This document shows positions 16,895 through 46,805 of a DNA stretch of 64,000 nucleotides, piece after piece. The first letter of the stretch is position 1. Every line of letters begins with the position of its first letter. A model generated the notes under the pieces. That model worked only from the letters and a program-made list of their open reading frames with translations. It did not search any database and was not told the origin of the DNA. Source of the DNA: Octopus sinensis. Taxonomy: Eukaryota. The position numbers and the translations under genes were made by a program. The stretch covers positions 12,896,001 through 12,960,000 of the forward strand of contig NC_043002.1 of NCBI RefSeq assembly GCF_006345805.1, written 5' to 3'.

Positions 16895-17027
16895 AATGGT
16901 TGTTATTTTAAGAAAACTTTTATTCTTTTACAAATTTGCAATTCTAATGATCATTAGTTTTTTGAAAGTTGTATTGATTCACGAAAACAACGCCAGGATT
17001 GATAATTACTGTGGCGGGAAGCTATTT
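16895..17027 (-). other. Gene B terminal exon 3 (supplies AA of the split TAA stop; rest is 3' UTR)
   Basis: Acceptor tttttctattgcag|AAAT. AATAAA at 16924-16919, then a U/GU-rich tract. Aligns with 45197-45065 and 41763-41635. 3' end approximate. Confidence 0.72.
16919..16924 (-). terminator. Polyadenylation signal of gene B
   Basis: AATAAA at a position conserved in the three exon-3 copies. Confidence 0.62.
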
Positions 17028-17297
17028 CTGCAATAGAAAAACATGAAATAATTCAATTAATTCATACGAAAAATGTAAGGAAAATCGGGTTTAGTAAATA
17101 TATAAGATATATTGCTTGCAGACGCATTCGTAACTGTGTGGTAAGAAGGTTACTCAAAAGCCACATAGTTCTGGATTTAGTCAAGAGCAAGTGTCTTCTA
17201 GTACAGCTTCTAACCGACCAAAACCTTGAGTGGATTTGATAGACGGAAGCTGAAAGAAGCCTGTCGTCTACACACACACACACACACATATATATAT

Positions 17298-17340
<43 letters not shown>

Positions 17341-17442
17341 TAATAATAATAGTAATAATATGAGGGAATATTATTCCAAACTTAAAGGGAAAAATTTAAT
17401 TTAGAAATAGTAAATCAAATTTCACAAAATATAATATATATA

Positions 17443-17630
17443 ATATAAATTAGAAAAAAATCCCCTTTTATCAATTCAATAATGAAAAATTAAATTATAC
17501 CATCTAGAAACTTACATATTATAGAAAGATTAAATATATTTAATCTTTCTATAATATGTAATTGTCTAGATAGTATAATTTAAGTTTTCATTATTGAATT
17601 GATAAAAGGTGTTTTTTTTCTAATTTTTAT
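17443..17630. repeat. 188-bp AT-rich spacerless palindrome
   Basis: Centre at 17536/17537; perfect over 17512-17561, a few mismatches and no indels beyond. Confidence 0.92.
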
Positions 17631-17666
17631 ATATATACACACACGCACACACACACATATATATAT

Positions 17667-17898
17667 CTTTACTCTTTTACTCTTTTACTTGTTTCAGTCA
17701 TTTGACTGCGGCCATGCTGGAGCACCACCTTTAATCGAGCAACTCGACCCCAGAACTTATTCTTTGTAAGCCCAGTACTTATTCTATCGGTCTCTTTTGC
17801 CGAACCTATAAGTGACGGGGACATAAACACACCAGCATCGGTTGTCAAGCAAAGCTAGGGGGACAAACACAGACACTCAAACACACACACAACCACAC

Positions 17899-17946
<48 letters not shown>

Positions 17947-18106
17947 TACGACGGGCTTCTTTCAGTTTCCGTCTACCAAATCCACTCACAAGACTTTGGT
18001 CGGCCCGAGGCTATAGTAGAAGACACCTGCCTAAGGTGCCACGCAGTGGGACTGAACCCAGAACCATGTGGTTGGTAAACAAGCTACTTACCACACAGCC
18101 ACTCCT
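17667..18106 (-). mobile_element. Family-2 SINE (gene B intron 2)
   Basis: Similarity to 1651-2090; inverted relative to the copy at 18494-18925. Confidence 0.85.
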
Positions 18107-42431: not shown

Positions 42432-42494
<63 letters not shown>

Positions 42495-42569
42495 CCTGAG
42501 AGGGATAAATTGTCGCCATTATATATTTTATTTATTTCTCGTATGCACACTGTTTGTTTTTGATTTTGA

Positions 42570-43080
42570 CAAGTGCACAGTATAGTGGGTCAGTTGGAAA
42601 TTTGGAAACGACATGCTGTACTGCTTGACATTCGCACCAAAAACTTCAGAGTATTTTGGTGGACAGTATTTGGGAGGACATTACAGAGGATTAGGAAAAA
42701 ATTGGATGAGTCCAATGGTGGTTACGAAGGTACGGTAGATCGGAAACCTTACTCTGATCGTTCTGATAAGAAAGGAACTCCTGAATTTGTTGCTGATATC
42801 CAGTCCTCAATTGACAACGTTCTTTGCAAGTCAATCAGGTCCGTCGCCAGAGACATATGTGTGTTTGAGGTTTTTATCAGGCAAGTAGAGTATGAAGACG
42901 TCGGTATTCCTCATACTAGATAAGGAAGGGACAATTTGTATCTCGAGCCATCAAAGACAAGTGGAAAACCACGCTATAAAGTTTTTCAACAAATTCAAGC
43001 ATCCCCTCTAACCCAATATGCTATGGATTTTCTCAGACGAGAAAAATTTCTGCCAGGATCAGATGGTGAACACACGGGAA
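42570..43080 (+). mobile_element. maT/DD37D-like transposase fragment
   Basis: ...RSDKKGTPEFVADIQSSIDN..., WIFSDEKNFCQDQMVN motifs. Confidence 0.7.
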
Positions 43081-43387
43081 GAAATTATCCATGAAAACAG
43101 TTTTGCATGTAATCTGAAATAAATGTCATGTCACATTCACTAAAACTAATTACATTATGTGGCTACGAGAGAGCTTCTAGTTGGTCACTTTATATGTTTA
43201 GCCACATCTCTTTCAGAGTATCTCACACATCCTCATATTATGTGCCTTCCCAGTAGACATTTTATGTCGGTGAATAAGATATGCGAAATATTTGGTCTTG
43301 TAATTTCTCGCAGGTGTATATCACCACATGAAGTAGACTCGATGGCTCATTTTTACAACGATAGCACTGCTTTATGCTGTCAACGTA

Positions 43388-43838
43388 GTGGAGGCGCAAT
43401 GGCCCAGTGGTTAGAGCAGCGGACTCGCGGTCGTAGGATCGAGGTTTCGATTCTTAGACCGGGCATTGTGAGTGTTTATTGAGCGAAAACACCTAAAGGG
43501 GGTGGTGGGGAACCCTGCTGTACTCTTTCACCACAACTTTCTCTCACTCTTTCTTCCTGTTTCTCTTGTACCAGTTTTTCAAAGGGCCAGCCTTGTCACA
43601 CTCTGTGTCACGCTGAATCTCCTCGAGAACTACATTAAGGGTACACGTGTCTGTGGAGTGCTCAACCACTTGCACGTTAATAAATGATAACATCGGCGGC
43701 GTGGAGAGGGGAGGCTGGTATGCGCGGGCGACTGCTGGTCTTCCACAAACAACCTTGCCGAGACTTGTACCTCGGAGGGTAACTTTCTAGGTGCAATTCC
43801 ATGGTCATTCATGACCGAAGGAGGTCATTTGCATTTTC
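43388..43838 (+). mobile_element. SINE family 3, tail type 2
   Basis: 14-bp TSD atgctgtcaacgta (43374-43387, 43839-43852); empty paralogous site at 51375-51388. Confidence 0.9.
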
Positions 43839-45064
43839 ATGCTGTCAACGTATTGCAGTTAAAATATAAATAAACCGATGTTGAGATGTATTCAGAGAAG
43901 ATGCGAGAGAGTGTAACTTTACGATTGCTAAAGAAGATAAATATTGCCCTAGAAGTGTGGTGACATAGGATCTCTCATAAATACTCTGAGAGTACTTGAT
44001 GGTTTGGACGCAAGTCTACCTGTTGCAATTCGTTTGCAATTGCAACAAAGATTTGAATGTCATCTCATCTTGGTAAGCGAGAAATGAAAAAAAATGAACA
44101 ATAAGTTGACAAATACTTGAAGTGTTTTCAATCACCGCGTAAATATTTTTAATTACCTTTCTCTAGTGTTAACTATGCCAGCTCTAAGTTATCTTTTCAT
44201 TTCGTACATTGACATAGAAATACGGATACGTGTGGTGGTGGGGGATCGCACTTAGTTTCAACAGACTGGATCACGTGACAGTCAACTTTGTGACTTTGTT
44301 TTATTTTTCGTCTTTTACCGAAAGAATGAAAGAATGAGAGAATGAAGGTGCGTATCCTAGTGTTTAGGGTGTGGCACTCACGATCGGAAGATTATTTTTT
44401 GAGGTTCCGCCTGGAGTGAGCGGTATTTTGTGTTCCTTATTTCACGTTGATCCAGTTCACCCATTAGTGAGTAATCCTGCGATGGACTGGCGTCCTGTCC
44501 AGGATGTTTGTTCTGACCGCGCACATATATGCTAGGGAAATCGTATAACCGGCCCCAAGTGTTCTCGAAATCAAAATGTTCAATAATGTGTATGCCCTCC
44601 CTGGGTGTTCAAAACGGCAATACAACTTCGGTACATGGGGGTGGTTCCCAAAACACTTTGGCACCTGTGACCACACCCTGAGGAAAGCTGCCTCCACGTC
44701 CAGCCATTTAGTTATAGGGGCTATGGAAAGTGCGGGTGAAATGTTTCCCTGTAGTTAAAAGTTCATTACAAAGTATCCCTAAAGGGCTCAACAGATCGAT
44801 AGAAGAAATAAGCATAAAACGTAGTTTAGTGCGACTTCAGAAACAATATCATTAGGGATTTGACTGAATACTTAGTCAAACCAAGCTGTTTGCCGGAAGT
44901 TAAAAAGGGGGGAAATATATGACAGTAATCAGCTGTTTCGTCAAACTTGTTAACCTTTCAGTATATTTAGTTGAATACATAAAACTTATTTATATATTCA
45001 TTTAAATTTCAATAAATTCTGTTGAATAAAGGCAATAAATACCAAAGCAATGAAAAGACAATGC

Positions 45065-45197
45065 AGTGAATTATGCTTTAAAACACTTTATTTTTGTATA
45101 AAAATGCAATTGAAGTAATCTCAGCTTCGACGCTTGCATCGGGTTTTTTTTATATGAATTCGTTGGGAGGGATCATTTCGGAAGCTCAAAGTGATTT
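45065..45197 (-). other. Gene C terminal exon 3 (AA of split TAA stop + 3' UTR)
   Basis: Strong acceptor tttttttttattttcag|AAATC; AATAAA at 45092-45087, 105 nt from the acceptor. 3' end approximate. Confidence 0.72.
45087..45092 (-). terminator. Polyadenylation signal of gene C
   Basis: AATAAA followed by a GTGTTTT/U-rich tract; conserved position. Confidence 0.62.
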
Positions 45198-46625
45198 CTG
45201 AAAATAAAAAAAAACAGATTTTTAAAGAGTAAAATCATTTCAGTTAACTTCATCTGTTAAAAATACTGCAAGATCTGCTCCATAAAACGATGCTATTGTG
45301 GATCAGAGGAATATATGTTCGTGACATATGTTCTTGGTGTACGTGATTGAAACGGCCTTAAATTAAAATCTCTGCTTATAAACCGGTGAGAGGCTGGTTA
45401 CTACAGATTCTCCTCTGTGAAAAAAACCTCTTCACAGACATGTAGTTTTGTAAGCATAATATATTAAAGAAAGTAATGAGAACGCCTCTTATATTTTGCC
45501 CTGCGTACAACGAAGTTTTATTCAGCTCGTCGGCTATTCGCAATATCAGTGCATATATTATTTACTGTTTCCTTTATATCCGGGAGGACAGGCATCATCT
45601 ATGCACATGACTGGTAAGTACACATCATTGACAATGTCCAAGGAGGCCAAAATGGACCTGGCGTTTGCGAGAATCGCTACCAAGGCGACATTTTCGTGTT
45701 GTTTCTATCTATATATTTTGTTTTTGAATCATACCTGTCAATGATGTGTATTTATGATAAATAGAAAAGTATATAACTTCCTTATACTAAAGAGATTGGT
45801 GTGTTAAGTGACGTGAATTGGTTTATACCAAGAACGAAGACCTTAATAGTGATTTGGCTCATTGATTGTAATGTATATTTGAAATTTAAATCTAATTATA
45901 TAAGATCAATTCGTGAAATTCAACTGCATAATCTATATTTCGTTAATGGACACAAGACAGTTCAGAGAAATAAAACTGTTAGAGGATTCGAACTTTGATG
46001 TTATAATATCGAAATATTGTAAACATTGTTACGCATTTAGCCTTGCATTCTATCTTTGCGACATGTTCACGTACTTTTAGTCGAAAATATATGCAAGATG
46101 ATAGCACGTTCGCATCAGAGATAATAAAAGGAAGTTTTAATGACCCTACTCTGAAGTAAGCACCCTATCGGGTAACATTGCTCCAAAGATTCTTCGAAGG
46201 AATCATGTTTCGGACTCTTTTATTTACTTGTACTTTAGGAAAAAATAGAAATATTTGACAATTTAATTTTTCGGGCTCTTCAAAATACAGAGACTACTAA
46301 AAGTTCTGGGATGTTAAGAACGCAGTGGACCCATGGTTCTGCTTACGAAGCAGTTAGTTCGAGCTTGTTTTTGAATGGCTGAGATGACTTCTGCACTGAA
46401 ATTATATTTCTTTAAATAAACTTTTCTTCTCGTTTTCTTATATATTAACTTCACAATCTTTATAAAGAAGCCCTTGGAGATTAACCACGGAGAAATTCAC
46501 GACCGAACAACGAGCATAAATGTTTAGCGAATATGATTCTAGAACTTCTATATTACGAAATTTTAGGAATTTCATCACAAGAAACAAATGTCATAGAAGG
46601 AACAATGATAAAAGAAAATACTCAC

Positions 46626-46805
46626 AAACGACCCTGCAGTTGGCTTTACCGGGATTGGTACATCTTTGTAGCTGGACGCTAAAATAAAGACCAGCTTGGC
46701 ATGCCATGGAAGGATAAGAGGTTCGGTTGAAGCAAGGAATATACCTGGTACAATCTTGTGGGTCACGGTTATTTCCGTATGCGAATGGGTTACAGAGAGG
46801 ATCAT
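46626..46805 (-). CDS. Gene C exon 2: CBM14 domain 2
   Basis: ttttacag|ATGAT acceptor and GTTT|gtgagt donor; 180 nt, phase 1-1. 63% aa identical to gene B exon 2 (hand count). Confidence 0.9.

Follow-up and report, generated by a model that had tools for sequence, protein, structure and literature searches.

A stop codon split by the last intron in a family of octopus chitin-binding beak protein 2-like genes

Introduction

In mitochondria, incomplete stop codons consisting of T or TA are completed by polyadenylation. Among nuclear genes, a documented case of an intron lying inside the stop codon is that of the plant EUL (Euonymus lectin) genes, in which the feature is family-wide and documented by cDNA (PMC2788552, PMC5449364), while phrase searches of the literature for split stop codons returned scattered examples only and no genome-wide frequency. 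As regards the proteins discussed here, a close described system is that of the DgCBPs of the squid Dosidicus gigas, which constitute the chitin-bound scaffold of the beak (PMC9716703; bioRxiv 10.1101/2020.01.08.899344). An octopod locus is described below in which two complete genes related to DgCBP-2 have a stop codon built as T/AA across the last intron (the slash marks a splice boundary).

The gene array

The window (the whole stretch of 64,000 nt that was analysed) is octopod DNA with a minus-strand tandem array of three-exon genes, of which A is truncated by the window edge and B and C are complete, together with one decayed terminal-exon relic (Table 1). Genes B and C each encode a 152-aa protein with a predicted signal peptide and two CBM14 (peritrophin-A) domains, a clean 459-nt ORF being obtained in both only when exon 1, exon 2 and the AA are joined. 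Exon 2 coincides exactly with domain 2 and has phase-1 introns on both sides. The true exon 1, with the entire first CBM14 domain, came to light when the two upstream regions were compared by tblastx; the idea of a signal peptide encoded in an exon of its own was rejected, a scan for one upstream of exon 2 having given only low-complexity artefacts. An Rfam scan of the window detected one tRNA only and nothing in the features of the B and C stop codons.

Table 1. Positions of the gene features and of the relic in the window
Feature	Position	Strand	Description
Gene A exon 1, coding part	6653..6929	-	phase-1 donor A/GTAAGT; exons 2 and 3 past the left end of the window
Gene B TATA box	30178..30185	-	TATATAAG; 128 nt upstream of ATG; invariant across 9 aligned family promoters
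Gene B exon 1, coding part	29781..30057	-	predicted signal peptide and CBM14 domain 1; phase 1 end (A/GTAAGT); Pfam CBM_14
Gene B intron 1	20980..29780	-	8801 nt, phase 1; 44% interspersed repeat
Gene B exon 2	20800..20979	-	CBM14 domain 2; 180 nt, phase 1-1; donor GTAAGT
Gene B intron 2	17028..20799	-	3772 nt, inside the stop codon; 46% SINE-like interspersed repeat
Gene B exon 3	16895..17027	-	AA (17027-17026) completes TAA; remainder 3'UTR; 3' end approximate
Gene C TATA box	55075..55082	-	132 nt upstream of ATG; family promoter alignment
Gene C exon 1, coding part	54674..54950	-	predicted signal peptide and CBM14 domain 1; phase 1 end (G/GTAAGT); Pfam CBM_14
Gene C intron 1	46806..54673	-	7868 nt
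Gene C exon 2	46626..46805	-	CBM14 domain 2; 180 nt, phase 1-1; donor GTGAGT
Gene C intron 2	45198..46625	-	1428 nt, inside the stop codon; 90.7% identity to the intron of the O. bimaculoides orthologue
Gene C exon 3	45065..45197	-	AA (45197-45196) completes TAA; remainder 3'UTR; 3' end approximate
Decayed paralogue relic	41183..42073	-	end of intron 2, terminal-exon copy and downstream flank

The relic has its acceptor, tcag/AA, at 41763 and an AATAAA at 41661-41656, 102 nt on, and neither exon 1 nor exon 2 was found nearby. Its counterpart in O. bimaculoides (L002 25554-25743), which is freed from its gene, has lost the AA and starts cag/CT. The AA is retained in the window relic, so selection alone does not account for the invariance of this dinucleotide.

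Protein family and domains

Judged by their sequences, B and C are members of the 'chitin-binding beak protein 2-like' family of cephalopods, and by this homology they are predicted to bind chitin. Homologues with precisely the same length of 152 aa occur in O. bimaculoides, O. sinensis, O. vulgaris and Argonauta. The best match to the gene B protein reaches 82% in the searched collection, from which the window's own proteins are absent. Bit scores against Pfam PF01607 are 63 and 55.8 for the full proteins, in two stretches each (E 2.8e-17 and 4.9e-15), and 38.4 and 35.1 for the exon 2 peptides alone (gathering score 22.1 bits); in a word-indexed protein search the 60 aa of exon 2 retrieved no homologue on their own, and the full spliced protein was required. 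Each CBM14 domain has six cysteines, invariant or nearly so over 14 family members, which gives the mature protein an even number, 12. The hydrophobic N-terminal stretch MEFRVAAAILLIAVSAVYC/QD, a putative secretion signal, is kept in all family members. A literature search for the LOC identifiers of the family returned nothing.

The likeness to beak proteins is sequence-based, the O. vulgaris name 'binding beak 2' being a label given by its source. DgCBP-2 (UniRef A0A0G2UIZ7, P0016), of about 158 aa and likewise with a signal peptide and two CBM14 domains, shares 49% identity with gene B over 93% of its length and matches the family profile with E 9e-41, and the solved structure of the DgCBP-3 chitin-binding domain matches domain 1 (7bwe, E 2e-4). 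It has to be noted that the recorded C-terminus of DgCBP-2 diverges from the family from mid domain 2 onward, as if frame-shifted, and its end is therefore not comparable with those of the family.

Conservation and specificity of the split stop

Exon 2 of gene B ends ...GAT TGT AAA TTC CAA T/GTAAGT, its last base (T, 20800) being the first base of the stop codon, and the acceptor, ttttctattgcag/AA, has 17027 as its first exon base; in gene C exon 2 ends ...AAC TGC AGG GTC GTT T/GTGAGT, the T at 46626 begins the stop codon, and the acceptor is tttttattttcag/AA at 45197. The donors are consensus (GTAAGT, GTGAGT), the acceptors pyrimidine-rich, and AATAAA follows at 16924-16919 in B and at 45092-45087 in C, the terminal exon being essentially all 3'UTR. 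The original prediction of a TAA assembled by splicing in both complete paralogues thus holds, as do all of its coordinates and numbers on recheck: acceptor-to-AATAAA distances of 103 (B), 105 (C) and 102 nt (orphan copy), an intron 2 of 1.4-3.8 kb (1428 nt in C, 3772 nt in B), and unspliced C-termini reading CK (B) and CEYFLLSLFLL (C) before a stop.

Both strands of the window were scanned for at least 11 pyrimidines out of 15, YAG, then AA, AG or GA, with AATAAA at +90 to +120. The rule matched three sites in 128 kb, two of them 17027 and 45197; in the intron 2 and exon 3 to which each of these two belongs, the scan gave no other acceptor-like site able to complete a stop. The evidence for homology between the two terminal exons comes from the wider family alignment and an nhmmer profile, the exons 3 of B and C being only weakly alike when compared directly (61 nt at 72%). 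In the alignment, seven homologous terminal exons from four species have a mean column identity of 52%, with the C-A-G-A-A and AATAAA columns invariant, and the terminal-exon profile gave one match behind each intact gene.

A T directly before a GT donor is found also at L001, L002, L003, L005, L006 and L007, and at Argonauta L006 canonical splice sites give T/AA; blastn and the nhmmer profile found no terminal-exon homologue in L004, L005, L007, L010 and L011. The coding ranges recorded in the public gene models for P0008 from O. sinensis and for two O. bimaculoides proteins, P0004 and P0009, run from the ATG to an AA directly after tttcag, situated 964-1719 nt past an exon 2 ending in T/GT. 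The NCBI gene models LOC106872971 and LOC106872972 of O. bimaculoides and LOC115213541 of O. sinensis have the three-exon plan and 152-aa CBM14 proteins of B and C, with exon 2 ending T/GT and the coding range ending cag/AA; their introns differ from those of B and C in length and in repeat load. The orthologue of gene C is LOC106872971, the two being colinear with exons 91-94% identical; exon 3 (94.5%) is only slightly more conserved than intron 2 (90.7%), a divergence of about 9% from O. bimaculoides being too small to set the two further apart. As the coding ranges of these three orthologous or paralogous genes indirectly suggest, the T/AA junction is presumably used in nearly all transcripts.

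One might alternatively suppose that the terminal exon is unused, with polyadenylation within intron 2, protein ends of CK or CEYFLLSLFLL, and the T/AA models as annotation constructs. Gene C does have an AATAAA 402 nt into intron 2, and at Argonauta L010 and L011 an AATAAA lies 35 and 56 nt past a contiguous stop, in intron-like sequence, which makes proximal polyadenylation conceivable within the family. This account is nonetheless very improbable, given that intron 2 of gene B has no AATAAA within its initial 1500 nt, that CAG/AA with AATAAA at about 100 nt is kept behind every intact Octopus gene examined but the AA is lost in the O. bimaculoides relic, and that a length of exactly 152 aa is found in most of the NCBI models of the family.

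Read-through ends and longer public models

The expectation that gene predictors would mis-model these ends proved right for some entries, whereas the NCBI orthologue models already have T/AA correct. Of the deviating models, P0030 ends ...QCK, which is intron read-through, and P0010 bypasses the stop by a non-canonical junction, that of the 169-aa model lying 3 nt past the canonical T/AA. In P0011 (O. sinensis) and P0026 (O. bimaculoides) the same T is joined to distant exons starting with GT or GC, which yields Cys and a tail; at both loci intron 2 is interrupted by N gaps at the place expected for the normal terminal exon, and the terminal-exon profile gave no match at either. The 94-aa tail of one of these Cys-adding models has what we take to be a resemblance to the end of a mariner-type transposase, and the other model ends beside a SINE-like repeat. 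The 169-, 171- and 247-aa public models were accordingly rejected as real alternative acceptor use, owing to the non-canonical junction of one and, for the other two, to the gapped loci and distant non-chitin-binding exons.

The same models bear on the idea that exon 2 is joined to more coding exons, such as a third chitin-binding domain, and that the 152-aa proteins are truncated models, an idea to which the existence of 169-247-aa models and the symmetric phase 1-1 of exon 2, a kind of domain exon repeated in multi-domain proteins, lend some colour. It is the least probable of the readings weighed here: tblastn of both full proteins against the window gave as CBM14-like pieces only exon 1 (A, B, C) and exon 2 (B, C), with no further CBM14-like coding sequence found within or beyond intron 2, and besides the irregular junction of the 169-aa model, the tails of the 171- and 247-aa models, which come from gapped loci, contain no chitin-binding domain.

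The original prediction had further seen in the unspliced ends an unpaired seventh Cys, and hence a possible switch between a monomeric and a disulfide-linkable form. On this reading, a second isoform with an unpaired C-terminal cysteine, able to form intermolecular disulfides or other cross-links, would arise where intron 2 is retained under regulation or a different acceptor is chosen, and the split stop would be kept for that purpose. Retention indeed adds a Cys in every copy, with CK and a stop exactly in five of eight genes, the two gapped NCBI models add one as well, and the 12 cysteines of the mature protein would otherwise be even. However, the additional Cys is uninformative, since a phase-1 split stop ends in T and the intron begins with GT, so that retention always reads TGT; CK, in turn, follows from the consensus donor GTAAGT, and selection need not be invoked. 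Further on the tails are not conserved (CEYFLLSLFLL and a stop, CEYLFFYF..., CKCRLF...), intron 2 of gene B has no polyadenylation signal in its first 1500 nt, and both Cys-adding models stand at assembly gaps. A switch of this kind is therefore very unlikely. Its more specific form, in which unspliced intron 2 would add a C-terminal Cys-Lys and tissue-specific retention would tune the cross-linking of beak, sucker lining and radula, is less likely still; if true, a chitin-bound scaffold protein would acquire a free thiol together with an amine, and the repeated occurrence in Argonauta of AA-initial insertions exactly at the T/GT boundary would signify that selection on the switch had been lost.

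Unsplit stops in Argonauta

Three Argonauta paralogues have the entire TAA in exon 2, ahead of the GT, which excludes the Cys and leaves the Cys-free end unchanged, so that the conserved feature is this end. The Argonauta comparison shows that what the family conserves is the protein end and not the intron. Precise cDNA-mediated intron loss was considered as the source of the contiguous TAA and rejected, because the post-stop sequence resembles intron 5' ends (GTGAGTAATTTT, GTAGGTATTTTT, GTAAGAGATATTT) and not exon 3.

Proposed explanation

The T/AA is, in our assessment, very probably an ordinary split stop codon, conserved across paralogues and species. Exon 1 would contribute the signal peptide and domain 1, and exon 2 domain 2 between phase-1 introns; with such borders the last intron comes to lie one base into the stop codon. 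The T of exon 2 would then be joined by constitutive splicing to the AA of a terminal exon of about 130 nt, which would otherwise supply only 3'UTR and the AATAAA signal, and the protein would end three residues past the last cysteine. According to the 50-55-nt rule, an exon junction downstream of the stop marks an mRNA for nonsense-mediated decay; with the stop on the final exon junction, no junction would remain downstream to trigger it.

To describe the intron as kept for two coding nucleotides is to mis-frame it, as it separates the coding part from the 3'UTR and polyadenylation exon. It would persist for that reason and because precise intron removal is rare, and not on account of those two nucleotides. 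Its length largely reflects its repeat content (46% interspersed repeat in B). Selection appears to hold the position of the protein end and the AA after the acceptor, while the tail residues and the intron sequence drift.

In practice, the value of these observations is mostly one of curation, in that the true C-terminus lies three residues past the last cysteine and depends on the T/AA junction. Entries ending ...QCK or ...CRKLFF, or with 17-95 extra residues (P0030, P0007, P0010, P0011, P0026), are probably mis-models, and as such should be kept out of proteomics databases, evolutionary studies and protein design. A further use of the family is as a handy test case for predictors and protein-to-genome aligners that are unable to split a stop codon across an intron.

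Comparison with known split and incomplete stop codons

The octopus split stop is an uncommon but ordinary gene-structure feature, already present in public models of sister species, and gives no sign of a regulatory switch; no new mechanism is opened by it. It shares with the mitochondrial case a stop that is absent from the DNA and is built post-transcriptionally by the placing of A after T, but in mitochondria it is the poly(A) tail that provides the A residues, whereas the octopus AA is encoded in a nuclear exon further downstream and brought to the T by the spliceosome. The EUL lectins are likewise small carbohydrate-binding proteins with a split stop conserved among paralogues; for them it was established by comparing cDNAs with genomic sequence in plants ranging from moss to Arabidopsis and rice (PMC2788552, PMC5449364). 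The two families are unrelated in fold and in lineage, and the octopus genes are an independent instance of the same gene-structure feature and, after the plant EUL lectins, a second well-conserved example of a stop-codon intron across paralogues and species.

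Gene array and exon structure

The window, animal DNA rich in repeats and of 62% A+T, carries on its minus strand a tandem array of small genes. A conserved exon 1 was found by tblastx comparison of the regions upstream of the exon 2 copies of genes B and C, and in both genes exon 1, exon 2, and the AA that begins exon 3 join into an unbroken frame of 459 nt (152 codons). The encoded proteins begin with a hydrophobic, signal-like stretch, after which come two six-cysteine domains of the Pfam CBM_14 (peritrophin-A, chitin-binding) type. Exon 2 is symmetric (phase 1-1) and corresponds to exactly one domain; both introns are in phase 1 (intron 1 as A|AT or G|AT), so that intron 2 interrupts the last codon behind its first base.

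Alignment of the promoters with those of the homologous loci L001-L006 revealed an invariant TATA box, TATATAAG, 120-132 nt 5' of the ATG. A CCAAT-like ACCAAAT is likewise common to these promoters, and telomere-like units run between the two motifs. A SINE-like interspersed repeat of ~450 bp, present in 8-14 copies of 80-94% identity, makes up 44-53% of the two first introns. Five ORF fragments resemble remnants of retroelement reverse transcriptases and DNA transposases, and one of them lies inside gene B intron 1.

Features of the array and its surroundings, in window coordinates
Feature	Position	Strand	Remark
Gene A exon 1	6929-6653	-	sole part inside window; remainder past left edge
Gene B exon 1 (coding part)	30057-29781	-	
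Gene B exon 2	20979-20800	-	
Gene B exon 3 AA	17027-17026	-	
Gene C exon 1 (coding part)	54950-54674	-	
Gene C exon 2	46805-46626	-	
Gene C exon 3 AA	45197-45196	-	
Relic terminal-exon copy	~41763-41656		remains span 41183-42073; without exon 1 or 2
Promoter stretches with telomere-like CCCTAA/ACCTAA units	30195-30235, ~55090-55130	-	
tRNA-Gln (anticodon TTG)	10040-10113	-	Rfam tRNA, 63 bits; between gene A exon 1 and gene B
SINE-like repeat copies	1656-2089, 12459-12842, 13300-13643, 16135-16540, 17654-18114, 18476-18939, 31296-31557, 50842-51264, others		
ORF fragments	3522-4511 (+), 23525-23947 (-), 33219-33932 (-), 36331-36825 (-), 60033-60464 (+)		

Split stop codon and terminal exon

Exon 2 of gene B ends in ...TGT AAA TTC CAA T, followed by GTAAGT, and that of gene C in ...TGC AGG GTC GTT T, followed by GTGAGT; the respective acceptors are ttttctattgcag|AA and tttttattttcag|AA, giving introns of 3772 and 1428 nt. 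The acceptor is separated from AATAAA by 103 nt in B, 105 nt in C, and 102 nt in the relic, and without splicing the tails read CK-stop (B) and CEYFLLSLFLL-stop (C). These sites, distances, intron lengths, and tails, all reported in the original prediction, were re-found in the sequence.

Both strands of the window were scanned for a pyrimidine-rich YAG acceptor followed by AA, AG, or GA and then by AATAAA at +90 to +120. Just three sites match, two of them being the proposed acceptors of B and C, each the sole match within its own intron 2 and exon 3. When seven homologous terminal exons, drawn from four species, are aligned, the columns average 52% identity, yet CAG|AA and AATAAA never vary. 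The layout exceeds chance by the rarity of scan matches and by the invariance of the terminal exon, and the reading of these ends as T|AA, with T closing exon 2 and AA opening exon 3, is borne out by the 152-codon frames, the rare acceptors, and the invariant CAG|AA. The third match, at 49082 (minus strand) in gene C intron 1, would read GAA TGA if spliced to exon 1 (phase 1, G), giving a one-domain protein; it is without homology to the family terminal exon and may be a chance occurrence.

A terminal-exon profile run with nhmmer matches once behind every intact Octopus gene and once behind the Argonauta locus L006, as well as at the relic and its O. bimaculoides counterpart. The latter starts with cag|CT, not cag|AA, and serves a gene no longer, which fits selection of the AA solely where it terminates a protein. 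In the O. bimaculoides relic (L002 23261-26187), a promoter and the initial 22 bases of the coding sequence persist, but domain exons are absent. The orphan terminal exon is a remnant of a decayed paralogue older than the split from O. bimaculoides.

Protein family and orthology

Full-protein searches returned 152-aa homologues from O. bimaculoides (LOC106872971, LOC106872972), at least 10 O. sinensis loci, an assembly labelled Argonauta hians (GCA_054771915.1), and O. vulgaris, where the source gives the name "binding beak 2". LOC106872971 is the orthologue of gene C, the loci being colinear with identities of 94.2% (exon 1), 91.1% (exon 2), 90.7% (intron 2), and 94.5% (exon 3), which places the window in an Octopus species at ~9% divergence from O. 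bimaculoides. With the family profile, Dosidicus gigas chitin-binding beak protein 2 (DgCBP-2; 49% identity over 93% of gene B) is recovered, and the solved chitin-binding domain of DgCBP-3 (7bwe) also matches; in the squid beak, the DgCBPs are the scaffold proteins bound to chitin (PMC9716703; bioRxiv 10.1101/2020.01.08.899344). The public DgCBP-2 (P0016) leaves the family consensus from mid-domain 2 on (…FIPCFNHT, then LILHVCQDGSLHLL…); judging by its sequence, it may be frame-shifted, making the recorded C-terminus unreliable.

Public gene models of the C-terminus

For three database proteins, P0008 (O. sinensis) and P0004 and P0009 (O. bimaculoides), the recorded gene range runs from the ATG to the AA after ...tttcag; the exon 2 lying 964-1719 nt 5' of this AA closes with T|GTAAGT or T|GTGAGT. 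Canonical GT...AG sites likewise yield T|AA in L006, for which the submitted 169-aa model dodges the stop by moving the start of the last exon 3 nt downstream, to a position that lacks an AG. The expectation that gene predictors would mis-model these ends thus holds in some cases: P0030 is a ...QCK read-through, and P0010, P0011, and P0026 exceed 152 aa. P0011 (171 aa; O. sinensis LOC118763692) and P0026 (247 aa; O. bimaculoides LOC106872968) are NCBI models which join to the T a Cys-starting tail from exons at distances of 4.6 and 8 kb; in both loci, intron 2 contains N gaps as far along as the normal terminal exon would be expected. One of the two models ends beside a SINE-like repeat, and the tail of the other resembles what is presumably a transposase end.

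Contiguous stops in Argonauta

Three Argonauta loci (L004, L010, and L011) have a full TAA in exon 2, located 5, 1, and 1 nt before a still recognisable GT, with AATAAA 35 and 56 nt further on in two of the three. The extra bases between the exon-2-final T and the GT, AAATGAC (L004 11851), AAA (L010 7803), and AAG (L011 6081), all begin with AA, and AAATGAC is identical at 6/7 positions to the exon 3 start of gene C and the relic. The trio is scattered in an approximate neighbour-joining tree that carries no support values, each member standing beside T|AA genes. In the more distant Argonauta paralogues P0013 and P0014, which consist of two coding exons, the tail is longer and the stop that follows it is unsplit. 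The contiguous stops of the trio may stem from insertions that happened repeatedly, from gene conversion, or from the ancestral condition. Once the split is abandoned, it is the Cys-free end, 2-3 residues past the sixth Cys, that is retained.

Read-through and the seventh cysteine

It had also been proposed that retention of intron 2, or choice of acceptor, could switch the protein between a monomeric form and one able to form disulfide links through an extra, unpaired cysteine. This functional part of the proposal is unsupported. As a phase-1 split stop ends in T and the intron starts with GT, read-through always gives TGT, so the "seventh Cys" is dictated by the splice site and uninformative, and the consensus donor GTAAGT makes the next codon AAG (Lys). 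The tails read CK-stop in five of eight genes (TAA or TGA next) and CEYF... or CKCRLF... in the rest, such that their conservation does not go past what the splice consensus requires. Also counting against a switch, no AATAAA occurs within 1500 nt of the gene B intron 2 donor, the Cys-tailed models P0011 and P0026 both come from the gapped loci, and L004, L010, and L011 drop the split yet keep the Cys-free end.

Proposed working and comparison with known split stops

In the arrangement we favor, splicing would assemble the TAA, and the terminal exon would otherwise supply just the 3'UTR and polyadenylation signal. The predicted joins read ...CAAT|AAATAG... (B) and ...GTTT|AAATCA... (C), with protein ends ...ADCKFQ and ...NCRVV. 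Rather than being kept for two coding nucleotides, as originally suggested, the intron parts the coding sequence from the 3'UTR/polyadenylation exon, and its length simply follows repeat load, the SINE-like element making up 46% of intron 2 in gene B. According to the established 50-55-nt rule, a stop needs a downstream exon junction to set off nonsense-mediated decay; as this stop is completed at the last junction, with none beyond, splitting it should make no difference to such decay. The family is useful in practice as a curation and benchmarking case. The split stop itself is of a known gene-structure kind, already modelled in the sister species, and plant EUL lectin genes have family-conserved introns within stop codons, documented by cDNA (PMC2788552, PMC5449364).
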